Source: Kudoa neothunni (taxonomy: Eukaryota; Animalia; Cnidaria). Taken from it: a stretch of DNA of 64,000 nt. Both the position numbers and the translations under genes were made by a program. The first letter of the stretch is position 1, and every line of letters starts with the position of its first letter. The stretch spans positions 16,785,469 to 16,849,468 of the forward strand of contig OZ199838.1 in assembly GCA_964304625.1 (NCBI GenBank), given 5' to 3'. Positions 3,668 through 37,819 of the stretch are shown here, piece by piece. The notes beneath the pieces are model-generated. The model was not told where the DNA came from and ran no database searches. It saw only the letters and a program-made list of their open reading frames with translations.

Positions 3668-6600
3668 TTAGAATTTTCTAATCTGTACGTTTTTGGTACG
3701 TTGGCGGTAGACAAAAATCGACAGTACGATTATTAGAGCTGTAAGAACTGCTAAAGTTGAAGTGGTGGCGATAACTGCTGTGCTTGATACAGAAGGTAAA
3801 GTAACGATGACTTCTTTCTTACGAGGGCCCAGGAATCCTATTCTTGGATCGGTGAAGGCGTAGACAGTCTCGTCCACCTCTAAATCCCTAAATAACATGA
3901 AATCAATTAATAAAATTCAGTGTAATACGTTGACTGAAGTGTCACATATGTGGATGATTTCAGTTGAATGATATCCATAAAAATAATTTTTAACAGTGTA
4001 GATTCAAAACATCGCATGTCCTCAGTGGACTCATACTAAAAATAAATCCAATAGGAAACTAGGAATGTAATAAATGTGTAAATACAAAATCAGTTATTTG
4101 ATCAGGAAGCCGTTTGCAATTCATTCGAATAGATTTAATCAACGATTCCATAAAAGCGGAATGGGAGTGTTTTTCATTATTTTGCATAAGCGTATGCAGC
4201 TTAAAACAGTTAACATGTAATTACTTATAATTATGGATTACCACAACGTCTGCAGTTAGAGATAGAAATTTTCCTTTGAATAATGAAAAGTTGCATCCAT
4301 CATAATTTTCGCAATATTTTTTGCTGTTCAAAACATTTAACAGTAGATTGCTACACTGCACATGGTTGTACGCACCAACTTCGGTATAAACTTTGGTAGG
4401 ATCCATAACTGTGATTAGAAATCGTTGAGTAGAATCTCGAGAAACAACAGTAAGAGAATTTTCTGGTTTGCATGGATTTTTAAAAAATATTTCCTTCTCA
4501 GTGGTGGCGGGTGTTTCCTTTTTTAATAATATCCAAAATGACTTGCATAATAATTCTAAATACTTCTATCAATTCTTGAAGTAAGGTGGCTCTTATTTTA
4601 TAATAGCCTAACATTTGAAATTGGTGTGAAAAAAAATAAATGTTCTTATTGTTGAGTTTGACTTGGGTCACATATGATTTTTCCCAATTATTTATGTCTT
4701 CTACTTCGAATCCCATTAATAAATTCCAATAAAGTAAGCTAATGTGTGTTTTTCCCGAAAATTTCTATAAAACGTTCAAAATTTCAACAATTATCAAGGA
4801 ATATACTCCAGTTGTAAAATCAAAGGTTTGCTTCAAGTACCAATAAAGTGCATTTGTGTGTGGTGTCAGTACTTGCACATGTTGATAATCGACAACTTTC
4901 AAATACGATTTGATTGTTTTTTCTGCATTTTTTATGGTTGATTCTATTTCTTCTTTTGAATAGCTGGAAAATTACTTTTAAGATAATAGTCACAAAATAT
5001 ACACAAACCCCTTTACTGCCTCTTGTGTGTAAAGAACGCGTATCAAGAATCTTCTTTTTCTAACATTGAGCAAATGTTCACAAACATCAACATATATAAT
5101 GCATTCATGTATATCCCCATCTATTAAAAGGAGATTTCAAAATGTATTCAAACGACTAATTTAAAAAAAAATTTTTCTTTCACATAAATAATATATTGTT
5201 AATTAATATTATTGCGAAATTCCCAGCTTTGCACGGTTTCGAGAAAATTTTTCATCACAGAAGAATACGGTCAAAAAATGAAGAAATATGAGATTCCTCT
5301 GAATAATCCTGAGGAAAGATTAAATAAATCTTTTTTTCACATATAATACTTTTAACGGCTGTGCTGGGCATGGTAAAAAATTGAGATCATTTTAGAGAGA
5401 TAATGAATGTTGCAAAACCTGAATAACTCAACTCGACAAAAACTTACGATAATTAATTTTTATACACTCTTCTCAAAACTATTTTGTAACCTCTTAATAT
5501 AAACAAAAATATGTTAAATAATTAGGTAAAGTAAGATATCAATCTATATATTAACTCTTATCACTTAAAATTCAGTCTAACGGTGGCTATAATGAAATTT
5601 GGGGACCTGGTTTCAATAGTTTCAATATGTAAGGACTGAATCCATCTGATTACAACATAAGCTTCCAGTTCTCATTAACCTAGCAAACTTGCATATTTCT
5701 ACTATATTAAATTCCACCTATAGAACTTTTAAAGTGTACTTATCAAGCCAAATATATTAAAAGTTCCAAAAATAAGGAGTGTATTTAAACACACCTCCAA
5801 ATGGACACATCTACTTAGATGTACAAATAGATAAACGATATAAGATGTATCTTGAAATCGTGGATATATAATTTAAGATTGAACCACTAAAAACGTTCCA
5901 AATAATTTGCAGAGGTTCAGTATAGATAAATGTTGCCACGAATAAACAAATATAATCCTATTATCGAAACCACGTCATCCGCTTAACAAACTTAACATCG
6001 AGGATAACACAATTTCCTGCATTAATTTTGAACTTTAGTTAATGCAATAACAAATGAGAGAATTTTTAAATTATCTTGAACTATTAAAAGTTACCTATAT
6101 ACCTATCTATCTATCTATCTACCTACAAGAAAAATTTACGTCGCACATGCATACTTAGGTCACACGCAAACACATCGACGGCAGTCCTCCTTTATACAGT
6201 AGCGCGGGGTTATTACCTAGTATGGTTATTGCGCACTTTTAGAAATAATGCCGAAAATTCAAAATATACGAACTAACTATAGATATAAATCGTGGAATAA
6301 AAGTAAAATATATCGATAAATAACATTATAGAATTAAGAAATAATTTTTTCGTTGGGAAAAATAGGAGTGCATGCTTATTGCGCACCCGAATTCTGTTGC
6401 TTGATTACATTGGCATGGTAAGTACGCAGTAGGAAAATAGGAAAAATCATCGCTTACTTGAAGAAACCGTGTAGATTATTAAGTAATTGAAAAATTAGGA
6501 ACTAAGAGTGACTCTCAAGCGAATATCGTTAGGCGCTCCAGCCTTAAATCAGTCACCACATTGAATAAAATTGTATCAATAAAATCGAAAATATTTTCAG

Positions 6601-7814
6601 AATTTATTTCAGGTGATTTAAGATTTTATCGCAAGACTCTTAGAAAAAAAATTCAAACTACTCTATATAAGAATGGATCGAACTTTCGAGAACAAGAAAT
6701 ATAAAGCTGTCCAGAGAGTACAATATAATAGGAAAATAAATTAGCCAATGGCATAAAGGACGACTCAAAAGATAATACTCCTATAACTGTCGGTCGAGGA
6801 CAGTTCCATGAGTTTGCTTCGAGAGTTAGACAAAAAAGGAAAAAATTAAATAGAAAATTCAAAAGAAATTATTCAAGATCCATCACATAGAAACGCTAGA
6901 ACACAATACATAGTTAAATTTTTCATTTTTCAAAATAAAGTAAACTTTGTTTAAAACAAGAGAAAAAACGGATTTTTTGTGGAAAAAATAATTCTGTCTT
7001 ACACTACCTTATTTATTTTCAAAATTCTCTGTGGACAATAAAAAAATTATTACGAGAATTTTTCATATCTCTCTACTAAAGTTATTATTAGTGCAACGAG
7101 AGAATAAATAAAAAACGCAGAAAAAAAGGTCGCGCACTCGCCTAATTTTTCCCAATGTGTGCGTGCGCTTGAGCATGGATATTAAGTAGTGGGGGGTTAT
7201 TGCGCACTTGACTTTTTGTCCCAAAAAAGTGAGAAGTATCCCTACACAATTGTGTATGTAATCGATAATCTTCAGTTAGTTTAAAACACTTACACACGCA
7301 ATTAAAATGGTATTCTACACTAAATATATAATTACATCTAATTTAAATTTAAATATAAATAAATATAAATTTAAATTTAAAGAGTTAAATTTTACCCAAT
7401 TATTTGATAGTATCCTTCAAATCGTTATTATATTTATTTAGTTTAACTCCCGAATTACGGTTTTATCCAAAATCAGAAATTTTTTTATCATCTTGGATTA
7501 AGTTAATCTTTTTTCGTTTATTACTCTGTTAATTTATTTTATGTATATTATACGTGATCATACGTGAGCATCTATGGGTAATGGAATTGAACTGATGATT
7601 TTGTAGAGGAAATTCTATGCCATGCTCAATTTTATAGCATATAACACTAACGTCTAGATTATTCTTCAGCATAACTACCCCATACTACAAATTAGAGCAT
7701 TATTCCAACATAATATCAACGTTAATCCAAATTTACGTAGAACTTTTTGTCCTTTAGTGCAACCCGATGTAAAAATAAAGACTGAATAACTAAAGCTAAA
7801 ATGTTTACTATCAT
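3668..7814 (-). CDS. GDA1/CD39 (NTPDase/ecto-apyrase) family-like membrane protein, predicted catalytically inactive; 9 exons, 461 aa
   Basis: Exons 7814-7737, 7684-7564, 5120-5009, 4963-4807, 4764-4564, 4517-4242, 4199-4086, 4035-3929, 3887-3668 are all joined by GT-AG introns with compatible phases and no internal stop. Hydrophobic N-terminus and C-terminal TM. Segments YGVVM..VICYKI, QVKLNNKNIYFFSHQFQMLG, KNPCKP, NHVQC..LLNVLNSKKYC...GCNF..FKGKF and RCFEST align by eye with CD39. Confidence 0.75.
5200..5927 (+). repeat. Dispersed ~730-bp repeat, inverted copy at ~20265-21000; lies in intron 2 of the CD39-like gene
   Basis: For example TTTTAAAGTGTACTTATCAAGCCAAATATATTAAAAGTTC (5727-) is the reverse complement of the sequence at about 20427-20466; colinear across the whole interval. 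Confidence 0.85.
6197..7260 (+). mobile_element. pogo/Tigger-like remnant
   Basis: TA-CAGTAG start at 6195-6202; repeated TTATTGCGCAC motif (about 6226, 6377, 7198); broken CENP-B-HTH-like peptide (EWIELSRTRNIKLS) near 6670. Right end not clear. Confidence 0.4.
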
Positions 7815-21313: not shown

Positions 21314-22779
21314 ATGAAACAATTGTTATTCAAGATATTTGTTATGCTATATTTTCAAAATATTCTTTCAGGCAAATAAACAGTTTCATCCCACTTTAAT
21401 AATCTGTTAGATACTATATTACCCTCTTATGAAAGAGATGAGGGAGATTGGCCTGTAGATGGGGATAGAAGTATGAACAATGTCATCGATCGATGGTTCA
21501 TTGACATCCAAGATGCCACATGCAAACCTCTCGAATACCGAGGCATCAAAGGGAACTATAACAATTTCGCCTCAAAAGGACTATGTGAACTGCATGGTAT
21601 TTTTCCAACTTAATGTAAATCTACAACCATTTCTTTTAGGAACGCTGACACCAAAAGAAAAAATTAAAGGATGCAAAAAACCCCATGCATCCAGGACACT
21701 GCGTAAAAAACACATCAACGGTAAAACAGTTCTATTTTGATCAAACAAAAGCCGACTGTGTAGAGTTTGACTATAATGGATGTGGTGGGAGCTTTAATCG
21801 TTACAATGATGAAAATGAATGTAAATTATATTGCTTAAGTAAAAAGATATGAACATTTCTATAGAATTTAATTATACTTGTTAGATAAAGGGAATGGCGG
21901 ACTTACAAATGCTGATGATGATAAAATGGAAAAATCTGATGCAAAATCAGTTTACAAAATACCAAATACATTGGACTGTGAGCTTAGACCTGATGTAAAA
22001 GACAAAGACCCAAGCACCGCAATTATTGCTGATATTAAGAAAAACAAGTGCGCTTATGCAGCAGTCTCATTAGACTCGAACACAAGAGGAATCTTCCGTT
22101 CATTCGGTGAATGTGTTAAAACATGTTTTCGTAAATATATTATTTATATCATTGTCTTATGTATTTTAGCACATGCAAGTGGAGATACTGGTGTAGCGCA
22201 AAACAAAAAGAAGGTACCTGCATGCGAAGGCGATCCATTTCAATACGCTATAACTAACGAAGATCAACCACAAAGTGGTGAAATTGTGTTCCGATATTAT
22301 TATCACACTAAGGAAAAAGTGTGTAAACGCATGGAAACAAAAGAATCCCAATTTGATCCAGCGAAAAATAATTTTCCAACTATGGAAATGTGTCATAGTT
22401 ATTGCGGAGCAGGTACTTTTGCCAATTCATGGTAAAAAAAATTTAAATTATAAAAATGCTTAATAGTTACATTGTGCTTATAAACTATTTTTAATTAAGA
22501 ATAAATTTAGAGGAGTACAAAAAGAAAATTGTGATTGAAGAAACATGCATTCAAAAAAAAAAAGGAGCATGGACCAACGGAGATAAATTTAAAGTCAAAA
22601 GATATTACTATAAAAAAGATCCAAATGTATGTCAACTGTTTTATTACAAGGGGTATGATGGGAACTCCAACAACTTTGAAACATGGGAAAAATGCAAGGC
22701 AATCTGTGGTGGTCATTATGACAATGGAGTAGCAGTTACTGAAGTCACTACGTTAGAAGAAGGAAGAGATGAAGTATGA
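21314..22779 (+). CDS. Secreted five-domain Kunitz/BPTI-like protein (paralog B), 6 exons; one +1 frameshift in exon 3 as assembled
   Basis: Exons 21314-21371, 21411-21596, 21640-21838, 21885-22130, 22170-22412, 22511-22779; exon-by-exon homology to paralog A (DRWFIDIQDATCK vs DRWYVDIQTATCK; GAWTNGDKFKVKRYYY vs GVWKEGDKYKLTRYYY). Intron 1 is GC-AG; extra base in the A6C4 run at 21675-21684. Confidence 0.85.
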
Positions 22780-25700
22780 ATTAAATCATATCACGTGTTC
22801 TTATTGAAATCTTTAAAACTTGAATAAATCAGGTTTTTAAATCTTGAATTTTATATATAAATTATCACAACAGTTTTTCAACATGGATAGACTTCAAACA
22901 AATCATTAAGTAGATTGGTGATGTTACAAGTGTGTGTTTTTTAATTTGAAAATACTCTTCTTAGTAATTATTTTCGCATTTCTCCTTAGTCGCCAATATA
23001 ATATCAATTTCTTGGTTTTTGAAGCATTAATTTTTTGGAAATAGAAATAAATAAAATGTTTTATGTTTATAGTAAGTTTACTTAGTTACATTATATTCCA
23101 TTGCTTAATAATTTGAAATTCCAACTTAACCAACACCATGAATAAATAAAATAATTTTAATTTTAAAAAATTCAAAATAAATATAAAAATTCAACTAAGA
23201 ATTATTCATTATTTACTTAAAACAGAAATCGAAATTTTGACAATAAACCATTAGATAACCGCGTGTTTATTGCAACATTAGTTTGAGTTGGCATTCAAAA
23301 AAATTAAACACAAGTCAGAATAAATTGAAAATAAGCCCTAACTCAATAATTAAAATATTCTAATTACTTAAGTATTTCCGTTTTCGTTAATAAATTATAA
23401 GTGTAAAATTGAAATAACACATCGGTTCAGACTAACTTTGATTTATAAATGCAAAAAAATTAAATAAGGGCGAAAGTACCATCTTTTTATGTTTAGAAAA
23501 ACTTTAATAAACTTTTATAGAGCAGGTTGAATTAAGCACTTTTAACGAAATTACTTTTAGATTAATGTTGATATTTAGGACCTTAATATATTTTTGTTTA
23601 TGGTATTTAATTTGTGGAAAAATGTATCACAAACCTATAACAACTAAACCATATGGTAAATAATTTCCTGAAAGAAAATAGTTTCACACAAAAAAAAGAA
23701 ATTGACAATAATACATACTTTAAAAGAATCTTTTATAAAATATAACTCATAAAATGCTGTATGCCGAAATATATGTACATTTTTATCAACTTAAAAGTGC
23801 AAATTGGGGAAGAATTTTCAAATGACAGTGGTTATTGCAAGAAGTTCGTTAAATCCGAATGCTGGGGTTGTCTATTGCAACGGTAGGAACTTACTCTTAA
23901 ACTAACATGACAATAAAAAGTTCAAATTTATTTTCCTAGTGAATGATTTTATCACTAAAAGGTGAAACCAAGCATAACTTTGTTGTTTGTCTGTTTTATA
24001 GTTGATATAACGTTGTATTATACTGTATGGAGAAAGATTGTCTGCGCTTGCATGTCTTAAGAGTGTCGGCACAGGAGGAGAAATTTGATACGACGATTCT
24101 ATCACTACAATAGGCAATGGATAAATTGAAATCTCAAATCAAATGTTACTATTGTGTTAGAAATGGACACATGTCTAAAAACTGTTATAGAAATAATTCT
24201 AGTCGTTCCCGCCATTTATCTTGTTCAAGCGCAGCAAAGCAGCGAATATATGTTGATATATGTTTTGGATCAAATAAATTGACTGCTATTGTTGATACTG
24301 GTTCTGGTATCACGCTAGTTAACTATTCTTTTGTAAAACAAATATATCCAAGTCTTAAAATTATCAAATCTAATTATTAGGTGACAATGGCCACTGGGTT
24401 TACACAGCGTGTTGTTGGAACTTGCGAACTCGAAACGCATGTATTTGGAAATAAATATTTCTGTAAGTTCTACGTAATGAACGATTTGATTACAGATGTG
24501 ATCCTTGGCCTTGATATAATTGAAAAACTCAACGTTATGATTGGTGTCACGTCTTGGAAAATTTCCCAAGAGTGGAAACGTGTTTAGTCGTATCATCGAT
24601 AAGCATCCAAATGTTGAATCATTACTGACTGATTTTGATGATATTATCTATACGAAGTGAAAGAAATTGCGAATGTCTGGGGTCACCAAACATGAAGTTT
24701 ACCTAAAAGCACAATGCTACCCAATTAAACGACATCAAAGGAGAAATGTATTTTGCAATTCGACCGGCCATTCGTGACCAGATAGATACAATGATTGAGG
24801 AAGACATTATAGAATGTTCAAGCAGTCCTTGGGCTTCCAATATAGTCCCTGTGCAGAAAAAAGATGGGACCGTCGGAATATGCGTTGATTATCGACAGTT
24901 AAATGATTTGACCAAACGTGATTCATTTCCACTTCCTAGAATAAATGATATTTTGGATAATCTGAATAGAGCAATGTGGTTTTCTACAATAGATCTCTCG
25001 AAGGGTTATCATCAGATTGGTTTAAGCGACAAAGCAAAGGAGATGACGGCTTTTTATACGCCTGATGGATTGTTCCAATTCAAGCGGATGCCCTTCGGCC
25101 TTTGTAACGCGCCCGCGACGTTCCAACGGATTATGAACCGTGCCTTCCAGGAAGTGTTATACAAGTTCTGTGTTATTTACTTAGATGATATCATAATCTA
25201 TAGCGAAACAAAAGAACAATACTTGAAGCATTTGAAGAAAGTCTTCGAAATTATTAGAAATGTGGGATTATCTATAAACCTTAAAAAGTCGAATTTTTGG
25301 GCCAATGAAGTGGAATACCTCTGTTATGTCATTAACAAACATGGTATACGTTCAAATGAAAAGAAAGTTTCTTGTGTGAAAAAATGGGATGTACCTAAGG
25401 ATATTCATCAGCTCCGAAAATTCCTTAGCTTCGTGTCATATTATAGAATATTTATTCCAAATTTTGCTCAGATTGCATATCCTGTGTATAATCTTACAAA
25501 GACTGGATCAAAATTTGAATTTGATGATGAATGCTTAGTTTCTTACAAAAATTTAATTGAAAAACTTATATCTGCTCCAATTCTTACACCACCTAATTGG
25601 GAAAAAAACTTTCATTCTTGATACTGACGCCAGCAGCAATGCTATTAGTGCGGTGCTATCTCGGTCAAACAACAACGTCGAAAAGTTACTGGATATTCGA

Positions 25701-26262: not shown

Positions 26263-29200
26263 GGCAGTGGCTATTACCACAGGAATCAATTTCTCTGCAA
26301 TTGTTATCTCTATTAAATAACTAATTTCACATTACTATTATTTATATTTTTCTCTACTAAATTATGAAAAATAAAGAAATTTGAGATGGTTGTAAATTTA
26401 TGTAAAATAGACGGTCAGAAATATAAATGTTAGCGAATTTAATAGACGAAAACAATATTAACGTTGAATTAATTATAAATATTAATCATTTCTAAATTAT
26501 TGCTTTGAGCCATGCAGTGTAAACATAACTCCACGTGTTTCACGAGTTTGGTTGAACTACAATGAGTGACTCGAATTCAGACAATTTTCATGTTGGAATG
26601 AAATTTGAAACTTTTGAAAGTTTAAAATCTTATATTCAAGAGTATGAGAAAGGTCATTTTGTGAATTTAAAGATTCGAGATTCAAGAAGAATTGACTCAG
26701 TGCAAAACCGGGTTAATCGAAATATTAAAAACACGCTAGTGTATTACGAAATAACTTATGTATGCTACTTTGGAGCCCATTACCAACGTAGAGGTAAAGG
26801 CGAACGCAAGAAAAATTCCCTTAAGAGAGATTGCCCATTTAAAGTTACATTAAGAGTAAGTGTAGACGGAAATTTCCTGGAGATTAGATCTTCTAACGCT
26901 GCCCATAAACATCCAAATGATCCATGGACCTATGAAAACTTACCCAGCACAGTCAGAGGAAATTAAACCGATGTGACGGCTATTTGTCAGAGCTTCTTTC
27001 TCTCGGAGCAAACAAAAAGCTCATACAAGCCATGATGAATGACGAGGCAGGCAAATATATACCTTTGAAAGCTATCCACAACATTAAAAAATCCTCTAAA
27101 GTCGGAACTGATAACATTACTTCTGTTTTAGAAATTTTAAAGAATCAATACAAGTGCATGGTGAGGGTTTTATCGAATGATAATAAAAATTTTTGTGGAA
27201 TCTTTTTTATGGATAAACAGATACTCAACACAATTAATTTCTTCCCAGAGTTACTCATGCTTGATGCAACCTATAAACTGCTAGTCTCGCGGTTATCTTC
27301 CGAGGTTTTCTCTATTTCGTTATTTTATTAGTTTATTAGTGCGCCATTGTATCTGTCTGTTGCAGAAGACTCGGTTGGTGAAACCCACATAACTAGTGGC
27401 TGCATGTTGTACGATGAAACGGCGGAGTCAATTAAATGGTATATTTCTCAACTAATAAAAATGATGCCGAACATGACTCAAAATGTCCGAACGATCATTA
27501 CTGACAAGCACCACACTCTAAGGAAATGTTTGAAAGAATTATTTCCTAACTCCAATCTAATGATCTGCATATTTCATGTTTCTCAAAGTTTTTGACGTGA
27601 AATAACTATGTCGAAATAGAGTATCACTCGAGAGAAAAGGAACTAATTGCTTGAAACTCTTAATAAAATTATCTATTCGAAAAATAAACATGAATTCGAT
27701 AAACTATGCAATAATTATTTTCAATAAAGCAATGATAAATTTATTAACTATTTTAAATCCAATTGGGAACCAATCGCTGATGAATGGGTCATAGGATTAA
27801 GTGTAGCATATCCTTTCTATGAAAACTTGACCAATAATAGATTAGAAGCCATTAATGATCAACTAAAACAAACAATAAAGAAATTTTCAAATCTTAATGA
27901 TTTTTTCCGTTTATTTTTTGACGCTCTCAAATCTATGAGAATAGAAAGGAAATACAGTATAACCAAAATATTACTGAACCCAGTTAATTTTGATACCTCA
28001 AATGAAGTTCTAAACGCGTATTTTAATCATTTAAATCCATTTTCCTTCAATATAATCCACAAACAAATTCAAAATTTTAACGAAAACACGAATACAGATA
28101 GTGTAACTACATTCATAAGATGTAATTGTTATATTTACAGATCGTACCTCCTTCCATGTAGTCGTATTTTTAAAAAGAGAGCGTTTAACCTGCTTCCGAT
28201 GTTCGATTCAAATCTATGCCACTCTAGATGGTCACAAGATTACATGAGCCGATTCTTGGAAATGGAAACTATAAATATAACACCAAAAGAGAGTATTACA
28301 ATAAAACCGAAAGGAATTTTTAATTCTTATGGAAAACGTTTAAAAAATTCCGTGATTTACACAAATAAGCTAGCAGCTTTGTCCGCTGAATATTGTGGGG
28401 AGTTTTATGATAGTTGCCGATCACTATTCAACACAATAGAAAAAATAATCAAGAACCACGACATCAAATTAATAAAACAAATAAATCAATTAGTTATTTT
28501 AAGAAAACTTAATTTTTCTTGATTTATTTTTAGGAAATCGCACCATTGAATACTCTGAGGCTATAGCCGAAGATGAAGATATCTCTGAAGGAAGAGGTAT
28601 ATGACACTTAACTTGAATATTTTACTCGTATCTAACTTACAAAAAATAGATGTTATAGAGAATATTTTTAATTCTCAAATAATTGTTGAGGGTGTTGGTA
28701 ATAATATTATTCCGCAAGGTGAGGAGATTATCGAGAATATTATTGTTAATAATATTTTAAATGAAAATGCTCCCGAGCTCCAAACTGTTTTATCTAAAGA
28801 TCAATTAGCACCTACTTTAAATATGATCGAGCTTGATGGTACTTTCATTTCCTTTCTTTTTTTAAATTATTTTAGCCTTAAAAATTCCCTCTCAATTGAA
28901 GTCTGTTGGGAGACCAAAGGGATACGCTTTAACCACTATTGGGTACAAAAAGAAAACTAAATTTTCTTAGATCTCTCATTATTTATTTGACTGGGATAAC
29001 CATTGTTCATCGTGTTACATTTATCTAATTTCAGAAAAATGACCTAATTATGATTAATTTTTTCAAAATTCTTGTCAATATTGAAATCTAAAGAGGAAAA
29101 TTCACATCATTTCTGTGAAATATAATGAGCATATCTTATCTTGAAGTTCATAATTTATGAATAGAATACAATAAATCACATAATTTAAACATTTTAAATA

Positions 29201-29700: not shown

Positions 29701-30737
29701 ATGGAACTAAATTCAGAAAATATCCGAAATAAAAAAATGATGTCTGCTATCCCTGATGAAGATAGAGTTAAAATTATCAATAAGTCCCTCGAAGGAAAAT
29801 CTACGAAACAAATACCTGAAGATCTTTCCATTAATTATAAGTCCGTTTGGAGAATCATAAAAAATTATAACAAGAATGGTCGCATACGTATCCAGAACCG
29901 TGGTGGCGATCAAAAGTCAAAGTTGTCTCATGATCAAAAACGTGAAATTTTATCATGGGTTGACTCTGATTGTTTATTGAGGTTAAATGACATGAAAAGA
30001 ATGATTCAGGAAAAATTTAATATTTCTGTGAGCAAAAGCACGGTTGACAGATACTTCAAAATTTTCTTTATACAATAAAATGTACTGTACCGATTCATGA
30101 GCGGAGAAATTGTGTGTCTACAATCGAAACTAGATATACCTACGCAAAGGATTTTAGAAAATTCGAGCTGGACATGGAGGATAAAACATTTATCTTTATG
30201 GATGAAGTAGGGTTTGCTATTGTTACGCGACCAAAAAGAGGACGGGCTGCTCGAGGTGCTTCTCCATATGTTTTTGTTTCGGCCACAAGAAGCAGAAACA
30301 TTTCAGTAGTGGCAGCCATGAATAAATATGGAATGATATTTCATAAAATTCATGATAAGGCGGTGAACGGAGAGGATCTTAAAAGTTGTCTAATTGAAAT
30401 AAAGGAGGCATGTACTTTAAAAAACATTAATGATCCTATCTTTATTTTGGACGATGCGCGTATTCACCATTATAAAGGACTACAAGACATTATAGACATG
30501 CTCGGACTCAAGTTATTCTTCTTGCCACCATACTCCCCATTTCTGAATCCACTAGAAAATATATTTTCTGTTTGGAAAAATTTGGTAATAAGAGGAGAAG
30601 CAAAAAATGAAATGGAACTTAAGAGGTTAATCTCTGACAAATTTGATGAAATTACCTCTTCCCATTGTGATGGCTTCTTCAGAAAAATGCTAAGATATCT
30701 CCAAAAAGCTGAAAATAGGGAAATAATAAATCAGTAA
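29701..30737 (+). pseudogene. DD34E transposase with one frameshift (~30060) between the HTH and DDE regions
   Basis: ORFs 29701..30078 (HTH) and 30114..30737 (FMDE, LDDARIH, PPYSPFLNPLE; 34 residues between D2 and E). Confidence 0.9.
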
Positions 30738-31969
30738 TATATTTTTATCCAAATATATTTAAATATATATTGGTTGTTATTATATTATTGAACAGTTTTT
30801 ATGCGCAATTTAATCTAAGTTAATTAAAATGAGTCTCATTAATTGCAATAGTTCTCACTTTGATCGGGAAACCCTATAAATGAAGTAATGGAAGCGGCGC
30901 ACAGTCTGCTGGTCATTTAGGCGTAGATAAAGCATTGAAAAAGTTCCAACCAATTTGTTATTGGTCTTCTCAGCGGATAGACGTATTGAACTGGTGCAAA
31001 TCTTGCAACACATGTGGAAAGCAGAATCGATTGAACAGGACTTACAAAACAGTTGATGTTATCGACGAAGTCAAAGAACCGTTGGAAAGAGTTGGTATCG
31101 ATGTAGTAGGACCATTGTCAACAACAGAAAGAGGTAACCGATTCATTCTTGTGGTCATGGATTACTACACAAAATTTTGCGAAGCATATCCTATGGTGGA
31201 TCAATCAGCTAAGACGTTAACAGATATTCTCATCTCTCAATTCTTCTGTCGATATGGGATTCCCAAAAAGATACATTCAGACAGGGGTGGCTGTTTTGAA
31301 TCTGAGGTGTTCAATGAGGTCCTCACGAAATTGGGAGTCGAAAAGACGAGAACCACTGCTTATTATCCCCAGTCGAATGGAATGGTTGAACGCTTCAATA
31401 GAACCCTGATTGACTGTTTGGTAAAAGTTTGCAGCGATAGAAATAATTGGGACGATGATATATTCTACGTCTTATGGGCCTATAGATCTGCAGTGCATGA
31501 GAAGACTGGCGTCTCTCCTAATCTTATGATGTTTGGACGTGAACATAGAAATCCATTCGAAACTTAAATTTGGTGAAAATATAAATGTGCCAAATCGTAC
31601 TAGAAGGTTTGTGTATAATTTCAATAACAGTTAAAAATATGCGAATAAGAAAATAAAATCTGAAAACGAAGTTCAAGTTAAAAATAACAAGTGTAACTTG
31701 TTTGGTCCATCCTCCTACAGCATTGGAGATAGAGTTTATGTTAAGAAAGTGATTAGAAAGAATAAATTAATTATAAAATTTATTCTATCGATGTTGATGG
31801 AGACGTAGAAACAATAAATTATGACAAACTTAAACCCTATTCCAGGTTTCAACATAATGGATATTATAATAACGAATCTCAATCAAATTTAAAGAGAACT
31901 AAGAAGAAACCAGTTTAGCTTCGTGACCATTTTCTTGGTTTGACACGAAAACAATAAAGAGTGAGGGAG

Positions 31970-35061: not shown

Positions 35062-37819
35062 GGTAGTGGCTATATCTCAGGTAATCAATATCTCTAAAAC
35101 TACTCAATATTGTTTGCCCATATTCCATATACCATATAATGTTTATCTAACTGAATATTTTGTAAATTTTTGAAAAATTAAAAAAAAATATTTTTTCTTT
35201 GTGTGACCATACACAAGTCCAACAGCAGCTGGGCACGATTTTTTATTTTTTTAATATAATTTCATCAATTATCATCATTATACACAAAATATAGAAATAA
35301 TAATAATGTTTGTCTTTTTTTTAAGAAATTAATATTCTTCACGTTATATGAAATAAAACAGCTTTCATATGACACATGTAGAGGATTATTCTCAAAATCA
35401 AAATTAAATTTTTTTATATATTTAATATTAAAATTATAATTTTATTTCTTTTTCTTTATAATTCCGATTGCGGTTAAACGACTTCCTCAAGGTCGACCAA
35501 TCGATTTAACTTTAGAAGGAATCACTAGATCTAAACAAAAATTAGCATAATTTTTTTAGGTTTAATCTTTTAATCGAGGTTCTTCTACGATGGCGTTTGA
35601 TTGATCGTTACAATCAATTTGTTCTTCTAGAGGACCAAAATCATCACCGGAATTAAGTTTTGGTATTTTGGTAGGTGAGAGTTCTATTAAATTTATCGAT
35701 GACTCCTAATTTTTATTAGTTAAAGTCAAATTATAAATTTTATACGTTTTCTTGAAATTCAGTTTCATCTTTAACTATATAAAATTTAACATATCATTTA
35801 TAAACAAAAATCACATGTATCAAGGAACTGATCGATAACCATGACATCGTGACATCTAATTATTTTTTCCATCGATCATTGTATAATGTTTCACAGAATA
35901 ACGGGAGTTTTTCTGATAACCTGTAACTTAGAATATGGCGACATGGTAATGAAAATAAGCGACAAAATAAACAATGACACGTTGATCGACTTGTGGTTTC
36001 ATTTGAGTTAGAGGATAATGCAGCATTGTCCAAGAATTTATGTTCTTTTTGAAGTATGATAAATGCATACTTCGTCAGACATTCTTTATAGTGTAGAACC
36101 TGCTTGTTGTTGAGAATATCGTTTGATTCATAATACAGTTGATTAATTGAAGAAACTTCCCTTTCAATTCTAAGTGAACTTAGAATTAAAAAAAAACCTT
36201 GGATGAAGTTGGCCAACGAGCTGAATTTTTGGACAACACTTTTAATTTTGGAATTTATTACCTCAAGGCGATTATTGGTTTCGTTGTCGTAAAAATTTTT
36301 CGTGTTGCTAATACCAATAACCCATTCATTGTATATTCCTTCCCAATTTCTTTTGAAATATTTACTTAATTTGGGACTTTTAAAATCGTGAATCCGGTCA
36401 ACGTAATGTAAATATTTATTGTAATCAGTCGGGTACATCATTTTTTGTAAACAACTTAAAATCTCTTGTCTTTTAGTAGAAGATATTTCAAATTTGTAAA
36501 CGGTGATATGTCTTTGAAAAATTTGATTCACATGAAATTTACATAAAATGAATGATGATTGTGGAAAACTTAATTTGAGACATTTTCTTAGCTTTTCATC
36601 CTTTTCTGTAACAATGGTATGTAAAATTTTTGATAAGTTTGGTATAAATTCTGCCAAAGTATTACAAAACCATTGGATGGAATTTTCCATCTCTTCGTAG
36701 AGAATGCAGGCACTCGAAATGTGAGTCAAACCAAAAGAATACTCCCCAGCAGATACGAATAACGGGGCTCTAAAATTATAAAATTATTCATCCATTTTCA
36801 AAAGTTACCTTGAATTAAGGAGTTTATAAGTTGCATCAATGAACATAACATCAGGATAAAATTCCAAAAATGATTTTATTATGTCGTCAGCGAAAAAATT
36901 CCATTAACGACTTTATGATTATCATATAAAATCCTAGCGTAACATTTGAAACCTTCTTTCAACATTTTCTCTATTACACATAGGTTATCACAGAATGAGT
37001 CTTCGTTTGCTCTAATATTGTGGATGGATTTCAAACGGATGTTTTTTACCCGTTTCGTTGTAAATTTTATTTTGAATTAATTTTTTATTGGCCCTAAGGT
37101 GAATTAATTCTACGAGATTTGGGTCATTTAGGTCAACTTTTCGTTGTTTTGGGAGATTTCGATATAGCACTGCACTTAAATCATGATTATGTTCTAATAT
37201 ACTAGAACGTACTTCAAGTGCTACACCATCAACAGAGGTCCTAAGAGATAAAACCAAGGGGCAGTTTCCCTTTAATGCTGGTTTGTTTCTAATTCCATCG
37301 GATTTTGTTTTATTCTTGCCACTGAAAATACAATGATATGTAATTTCATAATACCGCAGAGATTGGTTAATTGATTTTGTAATTCTATTTCGAATATTCG
37401 AAATAGTCCTCGCTTGATATTTATAAAGATTGCAAAAGTTTGATTCTTCGTAATTTTTTATAGCATTATCGAGTTCATCGAAGTAATGAAATCGTTTTCC
37501 AATTGCAAACAAATTTGAACTCATCCTGTGCCACGCTAATTAGAAAGAGAAATTGCGCTCTCAAGTTATACATAACTCAGAAATTTATTATTATTTCTAT
37601 ATTTTGTGTATAATGATGATAATTGATGAAATTATATTAAAAAAATAAAAAATCGTGCCCAGCTGCTGTTGGACTTGTGTATGGTCACACAAAGAAAAAA
37701 TAATTTTTCAAAAATTTACAAAAAATTAAGTTAGATAAACATCAGATGGTATATAGAATATGGGCAAACAATATTGAGTAGTTTTAGAGATATTGATTAC
37801 CTGAGATATAGCCACGTTC
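35062..37819 (-). mobile_element. MULE/Mutator-like element with SWIM-finger transposase (frameshifted)
   Basis: ~240-bp TIRs (35062-~35306, ~37585-37819); perfect 9-bp TSD ATTTCTAAA (35053-61, 37820-28); ORFs 37012..37524 and 35860..36729 with CKFH, TNNRLE, CHC..LPCRH. Confidence 0.95.

Follow-up and report, generated by a model that had tools for sequence, protein, structure and literature searches.

An intact nine-exon gene of Kudoa neothunni that probably encodes a non-catalytic membrane protein of NTPDase fold

Can a gene keep the fold of a cell-surface enzyme once the motifs of its active site have gone? A locus of the myxozoan Kudoa neothunni raises this question. It lies on the minus strand of a 64,000-nucleotide stretch of contig OZ199838.1 (assembly GCA_964304625.1, positions 16,785,469 to 16,849,468), to which we refer as the window, and occupies positions 7814-3668. 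A preliminary description, made from the DNA letters, had taken it for an intact gene of CD39 or nucleoside triphosphate diphosphohydrolase (NTPDase) fold in which all five apyrase-conserved regions (ACRs) are destroyed. On balance we favour a closely related reading, that this is an intact nine-exon gene encoding a membrane protein of NTPDase fold, most likely non-catalytic, and that it belongs to a divergent branch within a family of some 40 loci.

Gene structure and NTPDase descent

The gene model was derived from reading frames and splice sites. Nine exons are joined across eight GT..AG introns in consistent phases, from the ATG at 7814-7812 to the TAA at 3670-3668 (Table 1). The coding sequence is 1392 nt, giving 463 codons and the stop; the uninterrupted nine-exon frame described earlier thus stands, with two codons more than the 461 amino acids then counted. 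All 16 splice dinucleotides are intact. Given a chance stop rate of 0.077 per codon, the larger exons would hardly stay open at random (probability of an open frame 6e-4 for exon 6, 3e-3 for exon 9 and 5e-3 for exon 5). Seven introns are 39-52 nt long, while intron 2 is far longer. The GC content is 34.5% in the exons and 22.8% in the short introns, a contrast that agrees with that published for K. neothunni (PMC12239612), and the window as a whole is AT-rich eukaryotic DNA (GC = 30.6%). The assembly of this species, obtained from yellowfin tuna sequencing data, comprises 40.2 Mb (N50 12.0 Mb) in three chromosomes and a circular mitochondrial genome, with a genomic GC content of 30.4% and a median intron of 49 bp (PMC12239612).

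The predicted protein begins with a hydrophobic stretch (IVNILALVIQSLFL) that at 14 residues reads as more signal-like than a full helix. Near its C-terminus there is a predicted helix of 24 uncharged residues, followed by a basic tail of 12. The preliminary description had likewise noted a hydrophobic N-terminus and a C-terminal transmembrane segment. There are ten cysteines, and a conserved N-glycosylation sequon follows the last cysteine of the exon-6 module. The N-terminal signal or anchor, the cysteines, the sequon and the C-terminal helix together suggest that the bulk of the protein should face the outside or the lumen. The motif strings of the preliminary description are all found (YGVVMLKNNLD, YTQEAVK, VLTPHTNALYW, THISLLYW, DETVY, NPC, VQC, KYC..GC, MNC and RCF), and the exon said to open at YGxV is exon 2, which begins with the first of these.

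From what is the protein descended? Homology searches and structure models were run exon by exon, using exon-family profiles built from relatives in the genome. In a Pfam scan of single exons only exon 6 matches GDA1_CD39 (PF01150; E = 0.0016, 17.6 bits, profile positions 233-294). A profile of 13 exon-6 relatives from the same genome (A1) placed rat NTPDase1 (E = 0.044) and NTPDase2 (E about 1) at the top of a search of the PDB. A HMMER pass of A1 over 1.84 billion proteins gave 16 matches in all, comprising exon-sized open reading frames (ORFs) that resemble the family, genuine pieces of vertebrate NTPDases, and four long repeat-rich proteins that are likely to be chance matches. Among the vertebrate pieces is a turtle ENTPD8 fragment carrying ACR4 and ACR5 (E = 6.6e-4 for the whole library); five other NTPDase-like exon fragments were named by their motifs, and with the turtle fragment their E values range from 1.6e-4 to 9e-4. 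Aligned with ENTPD8 by hhalign, A1 matches with a probability of 96.6%, at the columns and E value given in Table 1. On this profile evidence the Cys-rich lobe II module encoded by exon 6 is homologous to that of the cell-surface NTPDases. The Cys-rich insertion of the ENTPD1/2/3/8 clade (P-C ... C ... G.G/Y..C ... C....C) is present, the copy in the window being without the module's second cysteine. There were no close homologs of exon 6 among 5.8e9 protein clusters, and a representative search of the databases gave exon-sized ORFs and no full-length protein of the family. A hidden Markov model (HMM) of ENTPD8 alone, which is too narrow a profile, gave no signal against all six-frame pieces of the window.

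The second line of evidence is structural. An AlphaFold2 model of exon 5 (67 residues, alignment A2) has a mean predicted local distance difference test score of 88.4 and consists of a hairpin, a second hairpin and a helix. In a Foldseek search of 350,542 PDB chains its top 48 matches are all NTPDases (E = 3.7e-3 to 0.19, template-modelling score about 0.5), and they span the ACR4 hairpin. They comprise enzymes of Legionella, clover and cowpea, rat NTPDase1 and 2, and human ENTPD4. The VIA alignment lays residues 3-67 of the model onto 206-270 of rat NTPDase1 and 195-258 of NTPDase2. In one paralog a single open frame spans exons 4 and 5, and this fusion once again gave a Foldseek list of NTPDases exclusively; a wide, rigid-body VIA search with this fused fragment found nothing, and a feature search of the ESM Atlas gave no usable match. 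The fold evidence thus consists of fragments, of which the exon 5 unit fits lobe II of the NTPDases, and the model supports an NTPDase descent of exon 5.

The remaining exons were placed with hhalign (Table 1). Five of the seven exons tested fall in the order of the enzyme, for which we roughly estimate a chance of well under one in a hundred. The collinear matches of exons 2, 8 and 9 to the ENTPD8 sequence are individually weak. Exons 4 and 5 of the window gene are recruited to the main-family profiles at about 1e-18 (exon 4: E = 3e-18). A mixed alignment of exons 4 and 5 (A6) proved to be a MAFFT mis-alignment and was discarded. The CD39-type descent proposed at the outset is upheld by the exon 6 profile, the exon 5 structure and, weakly, the collinear exons 2, 8 and 9.

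Table 1. Coordinates of the gene and of other features, with the top match of each exon-family profile to ENTPD8 found by hhalign. Positions are those of the window unless a chromosome is named.
Feature	Position	Strand	Content	hhalign match to ENTPD8
Exon 1	7737..7814	-	26 codons; start codon and hydrophobic N-terminus, probably signal peptide or short anchor	
Exon 2	7564..7684	-	opens with YGVV, the ACR1 strand position; LKNNLDV for DAGSSHT (7684-7652)	39-60 (exactly ACR1), 42-65 in a second run; P 0.16; collinear
Intron 2	5121..7563	-	2443 nt, GT..AG; contains two interspersed repeats	
Intron 2 repeats	~5195-6202; ~6191-7261		different elements side by side	
Exon 3	5003..5120	-	two Cys, then strand RVLYTQEAVK (YTQEAVK 5031-5011); ACR2 position by eye	305-324; P 0.038; not collinear, off target
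Exon 4	4807..4963	-	VLTPHTNALYW (4872-4840); ACR3 position by eye, without Glu	410-427; P 0.16; not collinear, off target
Exon 5	4564..4764	-	first hairpin of lobe II (ACR4 position, THISLLYW 4749-4726), second hairpin, helix	221-258, P 0.086; looser settings 204-262, P 0.03; collinear
Exon 6	4242..4517	-	Cys-rich membrane-distal module: NPC, VQC, KYC, GC, conserved sequon NFS	267-349; E 5e-10; collinear
Exon 7	4086..4199	-	helix with MNC cysteine; conserved in nearest paralog (L005)	
Exon 8	3929..4035	-	RCF cysteine, then helix	401-423 (YCANANYILTLLL); P 0.047; collinear
Exon 9	3668..3887	-	DETVY (3874-3860); FTDPRIGFLG (3856-3827); Ser/Thr stretch; membrane helix (3778-3707); basic tail; stop	residues 17-61 onto 446-493; P 0.19; collinear
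Intact NTPDase L001	C2:7.279 Mb		DAGSTGSR, ATAGMR, LEGVYQW, ELGGAS	
Intact NTPDase L053	C1:0.885 Mb		FDAGSTGTR; Cys-rich module	
Intact NTPDase L054	C3:5.318 Mb		FDVGSTGTR, GTGGLR, DQEAELGY, LDIGGSS; Cys-rich module	
Transposon-rich neighbourhood	1762-2283; 24707-25618; 26556-28519; 30048-31564; 35863-37539			
Open frame with Kunitz/BPTI match	21872-22432	+	187 residues	

State of the apyrase motifs

How much of the active site is left? At the ACR1 position the gene has YGVVM-LKNNLDV in place of the canonical YGLVF-DAGSSHT, a placement given weakly by the top hhalign match. The ACR4 position was assigned from the structure and by hhalign; THISLLYWNLL is found there in place of ALDLGGASTQI of the enzyme, with no Asp and no Gly-Gly. 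None of the motif's Asp, Gly, Ser or Thr residues survives in either loop, and bulky residues (LKNNLDV and SLLYWNL) are found instead. As placed by profile and by model, ACR1 and ACR4 are clearly destroyed.

The other three motifs have to be read with more care. The candidate for ACR2 is RVLYTQEAVK and that for ACR3 is LTPHTNALYW, each in a gap-free alignment made by eye. Exon 3 fits the family pattern C..C.W...hhY, and the family alignment supports a strand at RVLYTQEAVK. The ACR3 candidate has no Glu, where the main family has SSGL together with a retained NY, so that the catalytic Glu of ACR3 appears to be gone. The loss of both motifs is read from the collinear alignment, because no tool could place either. 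For ACR5 there are two candidate sites, DETVY and DPRIGFLG. The Trp is present in neither, and the second keeps IG..LG. The best-conserved C-terminal motif of the family, hYhF.DP.hG, is VYAFTDPRIGFLG in the window gene, and the hhalign match of exon 9 begins at the Gly of FTDPRIGFLG, leaving an IG..LG remnant without the Trp. From this alignment FTDPRIGFLG is more likely to be the remnant of ACR5 than DETVY, which the preliminary description had chosen and which probably lies a few residues too far upstream. Its view that all five ACRs are destroyed thus holds for ACR1 and ACR4, agrees with a by-eye reading of ACR2 and ACR3, and probably goes too far for ACR5.

With ACR1 and ACR4 replaced and the ACR3 Glu apparently gone, canonical nucleotide binding and hydrolysis have most likely been lost.

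Family members and neighbourhood

How general is this loss within the genome? Profile A1 has 46 matches there, and the motif-less family comprises about 40 loci, a number that the preliminary description had left to be counted. They are spread over all three chromosomes; several are clustered, and two pairs consist of identical duplicates. None of the exon-5 rows of the family keeps D.GG, and DAGS is kept in 0 of the 9 recoverable exon-2 rows. The same genome also contains three NTPDases with intact motifs (Table 1). Two of these, L053 and L054, share the Cys-rich module with the dead family, of which they may be catalytic ancestors or partners.

In a tree of exon 6 the window gene pairs with a locus at C1:3.857 Mb (L005) with 99/99 support, on a long branch outside the 20-member main clade. 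In this exon the two have at most 29% identity to other loci. This paralog lies on the chromosome of the window gene and has counterparts of all nine exons, 38-57% identical, as well as the degenerate motifs VLYTQ.A and VQVLTPHT; the first exon also matches, with the shared motif LVIQ.L....V. The motifs of exons 3, 8 and 9 of the window gene are common to the family. Of the conserved set, both members of the pair are without the third cysteine (F.C in exon 5) and the fifth (the second in exon 6), whereas the other loci that could be scored (L023-L052) keep both, with one or two exceptions. Two extra cysteines are found in lobe I of the pair, so that the total is still ten. In the disulfide map of NTPDase3 and the structure of NTPDase2 the third and fifth cysteines form what we take to be a single disulfide. 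Their joint absence, as seen in the sequences, fits the loss of one whole disulfide and conservation of the fold.

Some individual loci have features of their own. Between the ectodomain and the membrane helix of L024 (C3:9.654 Mb), at L024:677-1039, there are about 11 tandem copies of the eight-residue TIDELFTP, which look like a Thr/Pro-rich stalk. The pairs L035/L036 (C2:11.539 and 11.578 Mb) and L045/L046 (C2:7.504 and 7.528 Mb) are identical over the exon-6 stretch compared, with equal scores, suggesting recent segmental duplications or uncollapsed haplotypes. An exon 6 resembling those of the family (P0001, 84.8 bits) lies on a 901-nt metagenome scaffold (L060; ENA ERZ28624939, scaffold_21136), so that relatives of the family exist in at least one other public sample.

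There are no other exons of the family within the 64 kb of the window, and a tandem array there was thus rejected. The neighbourhood is rich in transposons, with a DUF659 ORF, a reverse transcriptase, an integrase, a DDE_3 transposase of Tc1/mariner type between these last two, and two transposase remnants of MULE/ZSWIM3 type. Neighbours of the gene were also classed as long-terminal-repeat retroelements. A further open frame in the window ends in a weak match to a Kunitz/BPTI protease-inhibitor domain (E = 2.5e-4, just over the Pfam cut-off).

Maintenance, alternatives and known counterparts

Several observations weigh against an intact, maintained NTPDase-fold gene. In the exon-by-exon Pfam scan no exon attains the PF01150 gathering score of 24.9 bits. 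When the PDB was searched by HMM, neither the exon 4 nor the exon 5 profile gave an NTPDase (exon 5 had no match, and exon 4 matched tubulin acetyltransferase only, by chance), and hhalign could place neither exon 3 nor exon 4 on the NTPDase profile. Three metatranscriptomic runs carrying the host's label gave no reads at the locus; these runs held no parasite reads and thus are no test, and in the published genome work the parasite's RNA reads were too scarce for an annotation from transcripts (PMC12239612). In addition there are about 2 kb of repeats within intron 2, and in the only close paralog, L005, the frame of exon 6 is shifted by 1 nt between KKYCEK and SYKGCNFS (L005:1500-1530). Either the paralog is a genuine pseudogene or the frameshift is a homopolymer error, such as a HiFi assembly of low coverage may contain. 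In the comparison of the window gene with this paralog dS is near saturation. The intron repeats and the paralog frameshift mean that the branch to which the window gene belongs may be decaying.

Is the gene then a young pseudogene, an unexpressed copy of the family that has not yet acquired stops? Intron 2 reaches its length, fifty times the typical one, because two interspersed repeats sit inside it; the corresponding interval of L005 is about 390 nt. Outside this locus the genome contains at least 6 copies of the first and at least 30 of the second, with identities of 77-86% (306 first-look candidates), and word depth rises to 180 in the intron compared with 5 in the exons. They have no long ORF and look like non-autonomous elements. 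Together with the frameshifted paralog, the transposons nearby, the lack of reads in runs that held none from the parasite, and the lack of a matching protein in public sets searched with exon 6, these insertions are what a decaying locus might present. However, both lie wholly within the intron, and 463 codons remain open over nine exons at the chance stop rate given above, with every splice dinucleotide in place. The gene retains the family motifs and ten cysteines, the contrast in GC content between exons and introns is preserved, and over 413 codons the proportions of nonsynonymous and synonymous differences from the paralog are pN = 0.32 and pS = 0.54 (dN/dS = 0.43). We therefore consider a pseudogene unlikely. 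The preliminary description had called the gene maintained; its intact frame, the kept family motifs and this ratio, taken against a paralog of near-saturated dS, agree with that in an indirect way.

A second alternative retains the gene and questions its inactivity. Catalytic residues migrate in some pseudoenzymes, according to a review (PMC10211241), and the conserved Asp of FTDPRIG and the IG..LG remnant near ACR5 might be thought to support residual nucleotide binding or weak hydrolysis through relocated residues. But the Gly, Ser, Thr and Asp of both phosphate-loop motifs are lost without exception, the same motifs are absent from the exon-5 and exon-2 rows of the family, and the genome has three intact-motif NTPDases for the chemistry. 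Such activity seems to us very improbable. Slighter still is the chance that only a Cys-rich module, acquired by shuffling, resembles the NTPDases and that the remainder of the protein has a different source. Significant sequence matches do come from exon 6 only, exons 3 and 4 are off target, and the ESM Atlas and wide VIA searches were empty; yet the exon 5 model matches NTPDases only, and at the right residues, the top matches of exons 2, 8 and 9 are collinear with the enzyme, and both the YG.V start of exon 2 and the membrane topology agree. Bacterial or host contamination was rejected, since the introns, GC content and assembly statistics all fit Kudoa.

The reading that we prefer, of an intact gene for a non-catalytic NTPDase-fold protein, can be put in structural terms. 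A protein of about 463 residues would adopt the two-lobed fold of a cell-surface NTPDase (CD39/ENTPD1-3,8 type). The signal or anchor, ten cysteines, sequon, Ser/Thr stretch, membrane helix and basic tail would make it a glycoprotein that is either type I or doubly anchored in the manner of CD39. Its phosphate loops would be filled with bulky side chains, making canonical nucleotide binding unlikely, and the scaffold may act through its surface as an adhesin, a coat or a ligand-binding protein; the preliminary description had put forward adhesin, receptor, decoy or variable surface protein as putative roles. More tentatively, and with considerably more doubt than confidence, we suggest that in Kudoa an ecto-enzyme of CD39 type has given rise to a large, fast-diverging repertoire of some 40 dead ectodomains, which might be its main variable surface or host-contact coat, with disulfides re-wired in sub-branches such as that of the window gene.

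Myxozoans are economically important parasites of fish, in the case of Kudoa of fish muscle, and their surface molecules are almost unknown. Our literature search gave no paper that describes NTPDase-like families of Myxozoa or, in any organism, a naturally expanded motif-less branch of GDA1/CD39, and the sole 'inactive member' that we found in the GDA1/CD39 literature is truncated oncogenic ENTPD5. The published annotation of K. neothunni was built on protein hints and is biased against fast-evolving genes (PMC12239612). Expression on the parasite surface, if it occurs, would make these proteins candidates for host interaction, immune evasion, diagnostics and vaccines, and the NTPDases would join those enzyme folds that have been recycled as non-catalytic surface proteins. 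The trans-sialidase-like family of Trypanosoma cruzi has enzymatically inactive surface members alongside a few active ones, with expression and surface location proven. There too a parasite enzyme fold has been expanded into many dead members; the fold is unrelated, and for the Kudoa family expression and surface location are putative. A coat of dead ectodomains, if real, would be a cnidarian counterpart of the protozoan families of inactive trans-sialidases or variant surface proteins.

Active E-NTPDases of parasites have been linked to host-cell adhesion, and an adhesive role has been proposed for them (PMC8630654). They share a surface-exposed NTPDase ectodomain with the Kudoa protein as predicted here; in contrast to it they are active and keep all five ACRs, which it appears to have lost. 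Within the Kudoa family the window gene has the same exon structure, and its exons 4, 5 and 6 join the family profiles. Together with its one paralog it stands on its own long branch, without the two cysteines that nearly all the others keep, and so adds a second, structurally distinct branch to the family. Compared with the cell-surface NTPDases themselves (ENTPD1/CD39, ENTPD2, 3 and 8), the protein differs in its bulky ACR1 and ACR4 loops, the lack of an ACR3 Glu as aligned by eye, an unrecognisable ACR2, and the missing Trp of ACR5. It also lacks the third and fifth conserved cysteines and has two extra in lobe I, and none of its exons reaches the Pfam threshold. Yet it shares with these enzymes the Cys-rich module of lobe II, the unit of two hairpins and a helix, the collinear order of exons and YG.V at the ACR1 strand, along with a hydrophobic N-terminus, a C-terminal membrane helix and ten cysteines.

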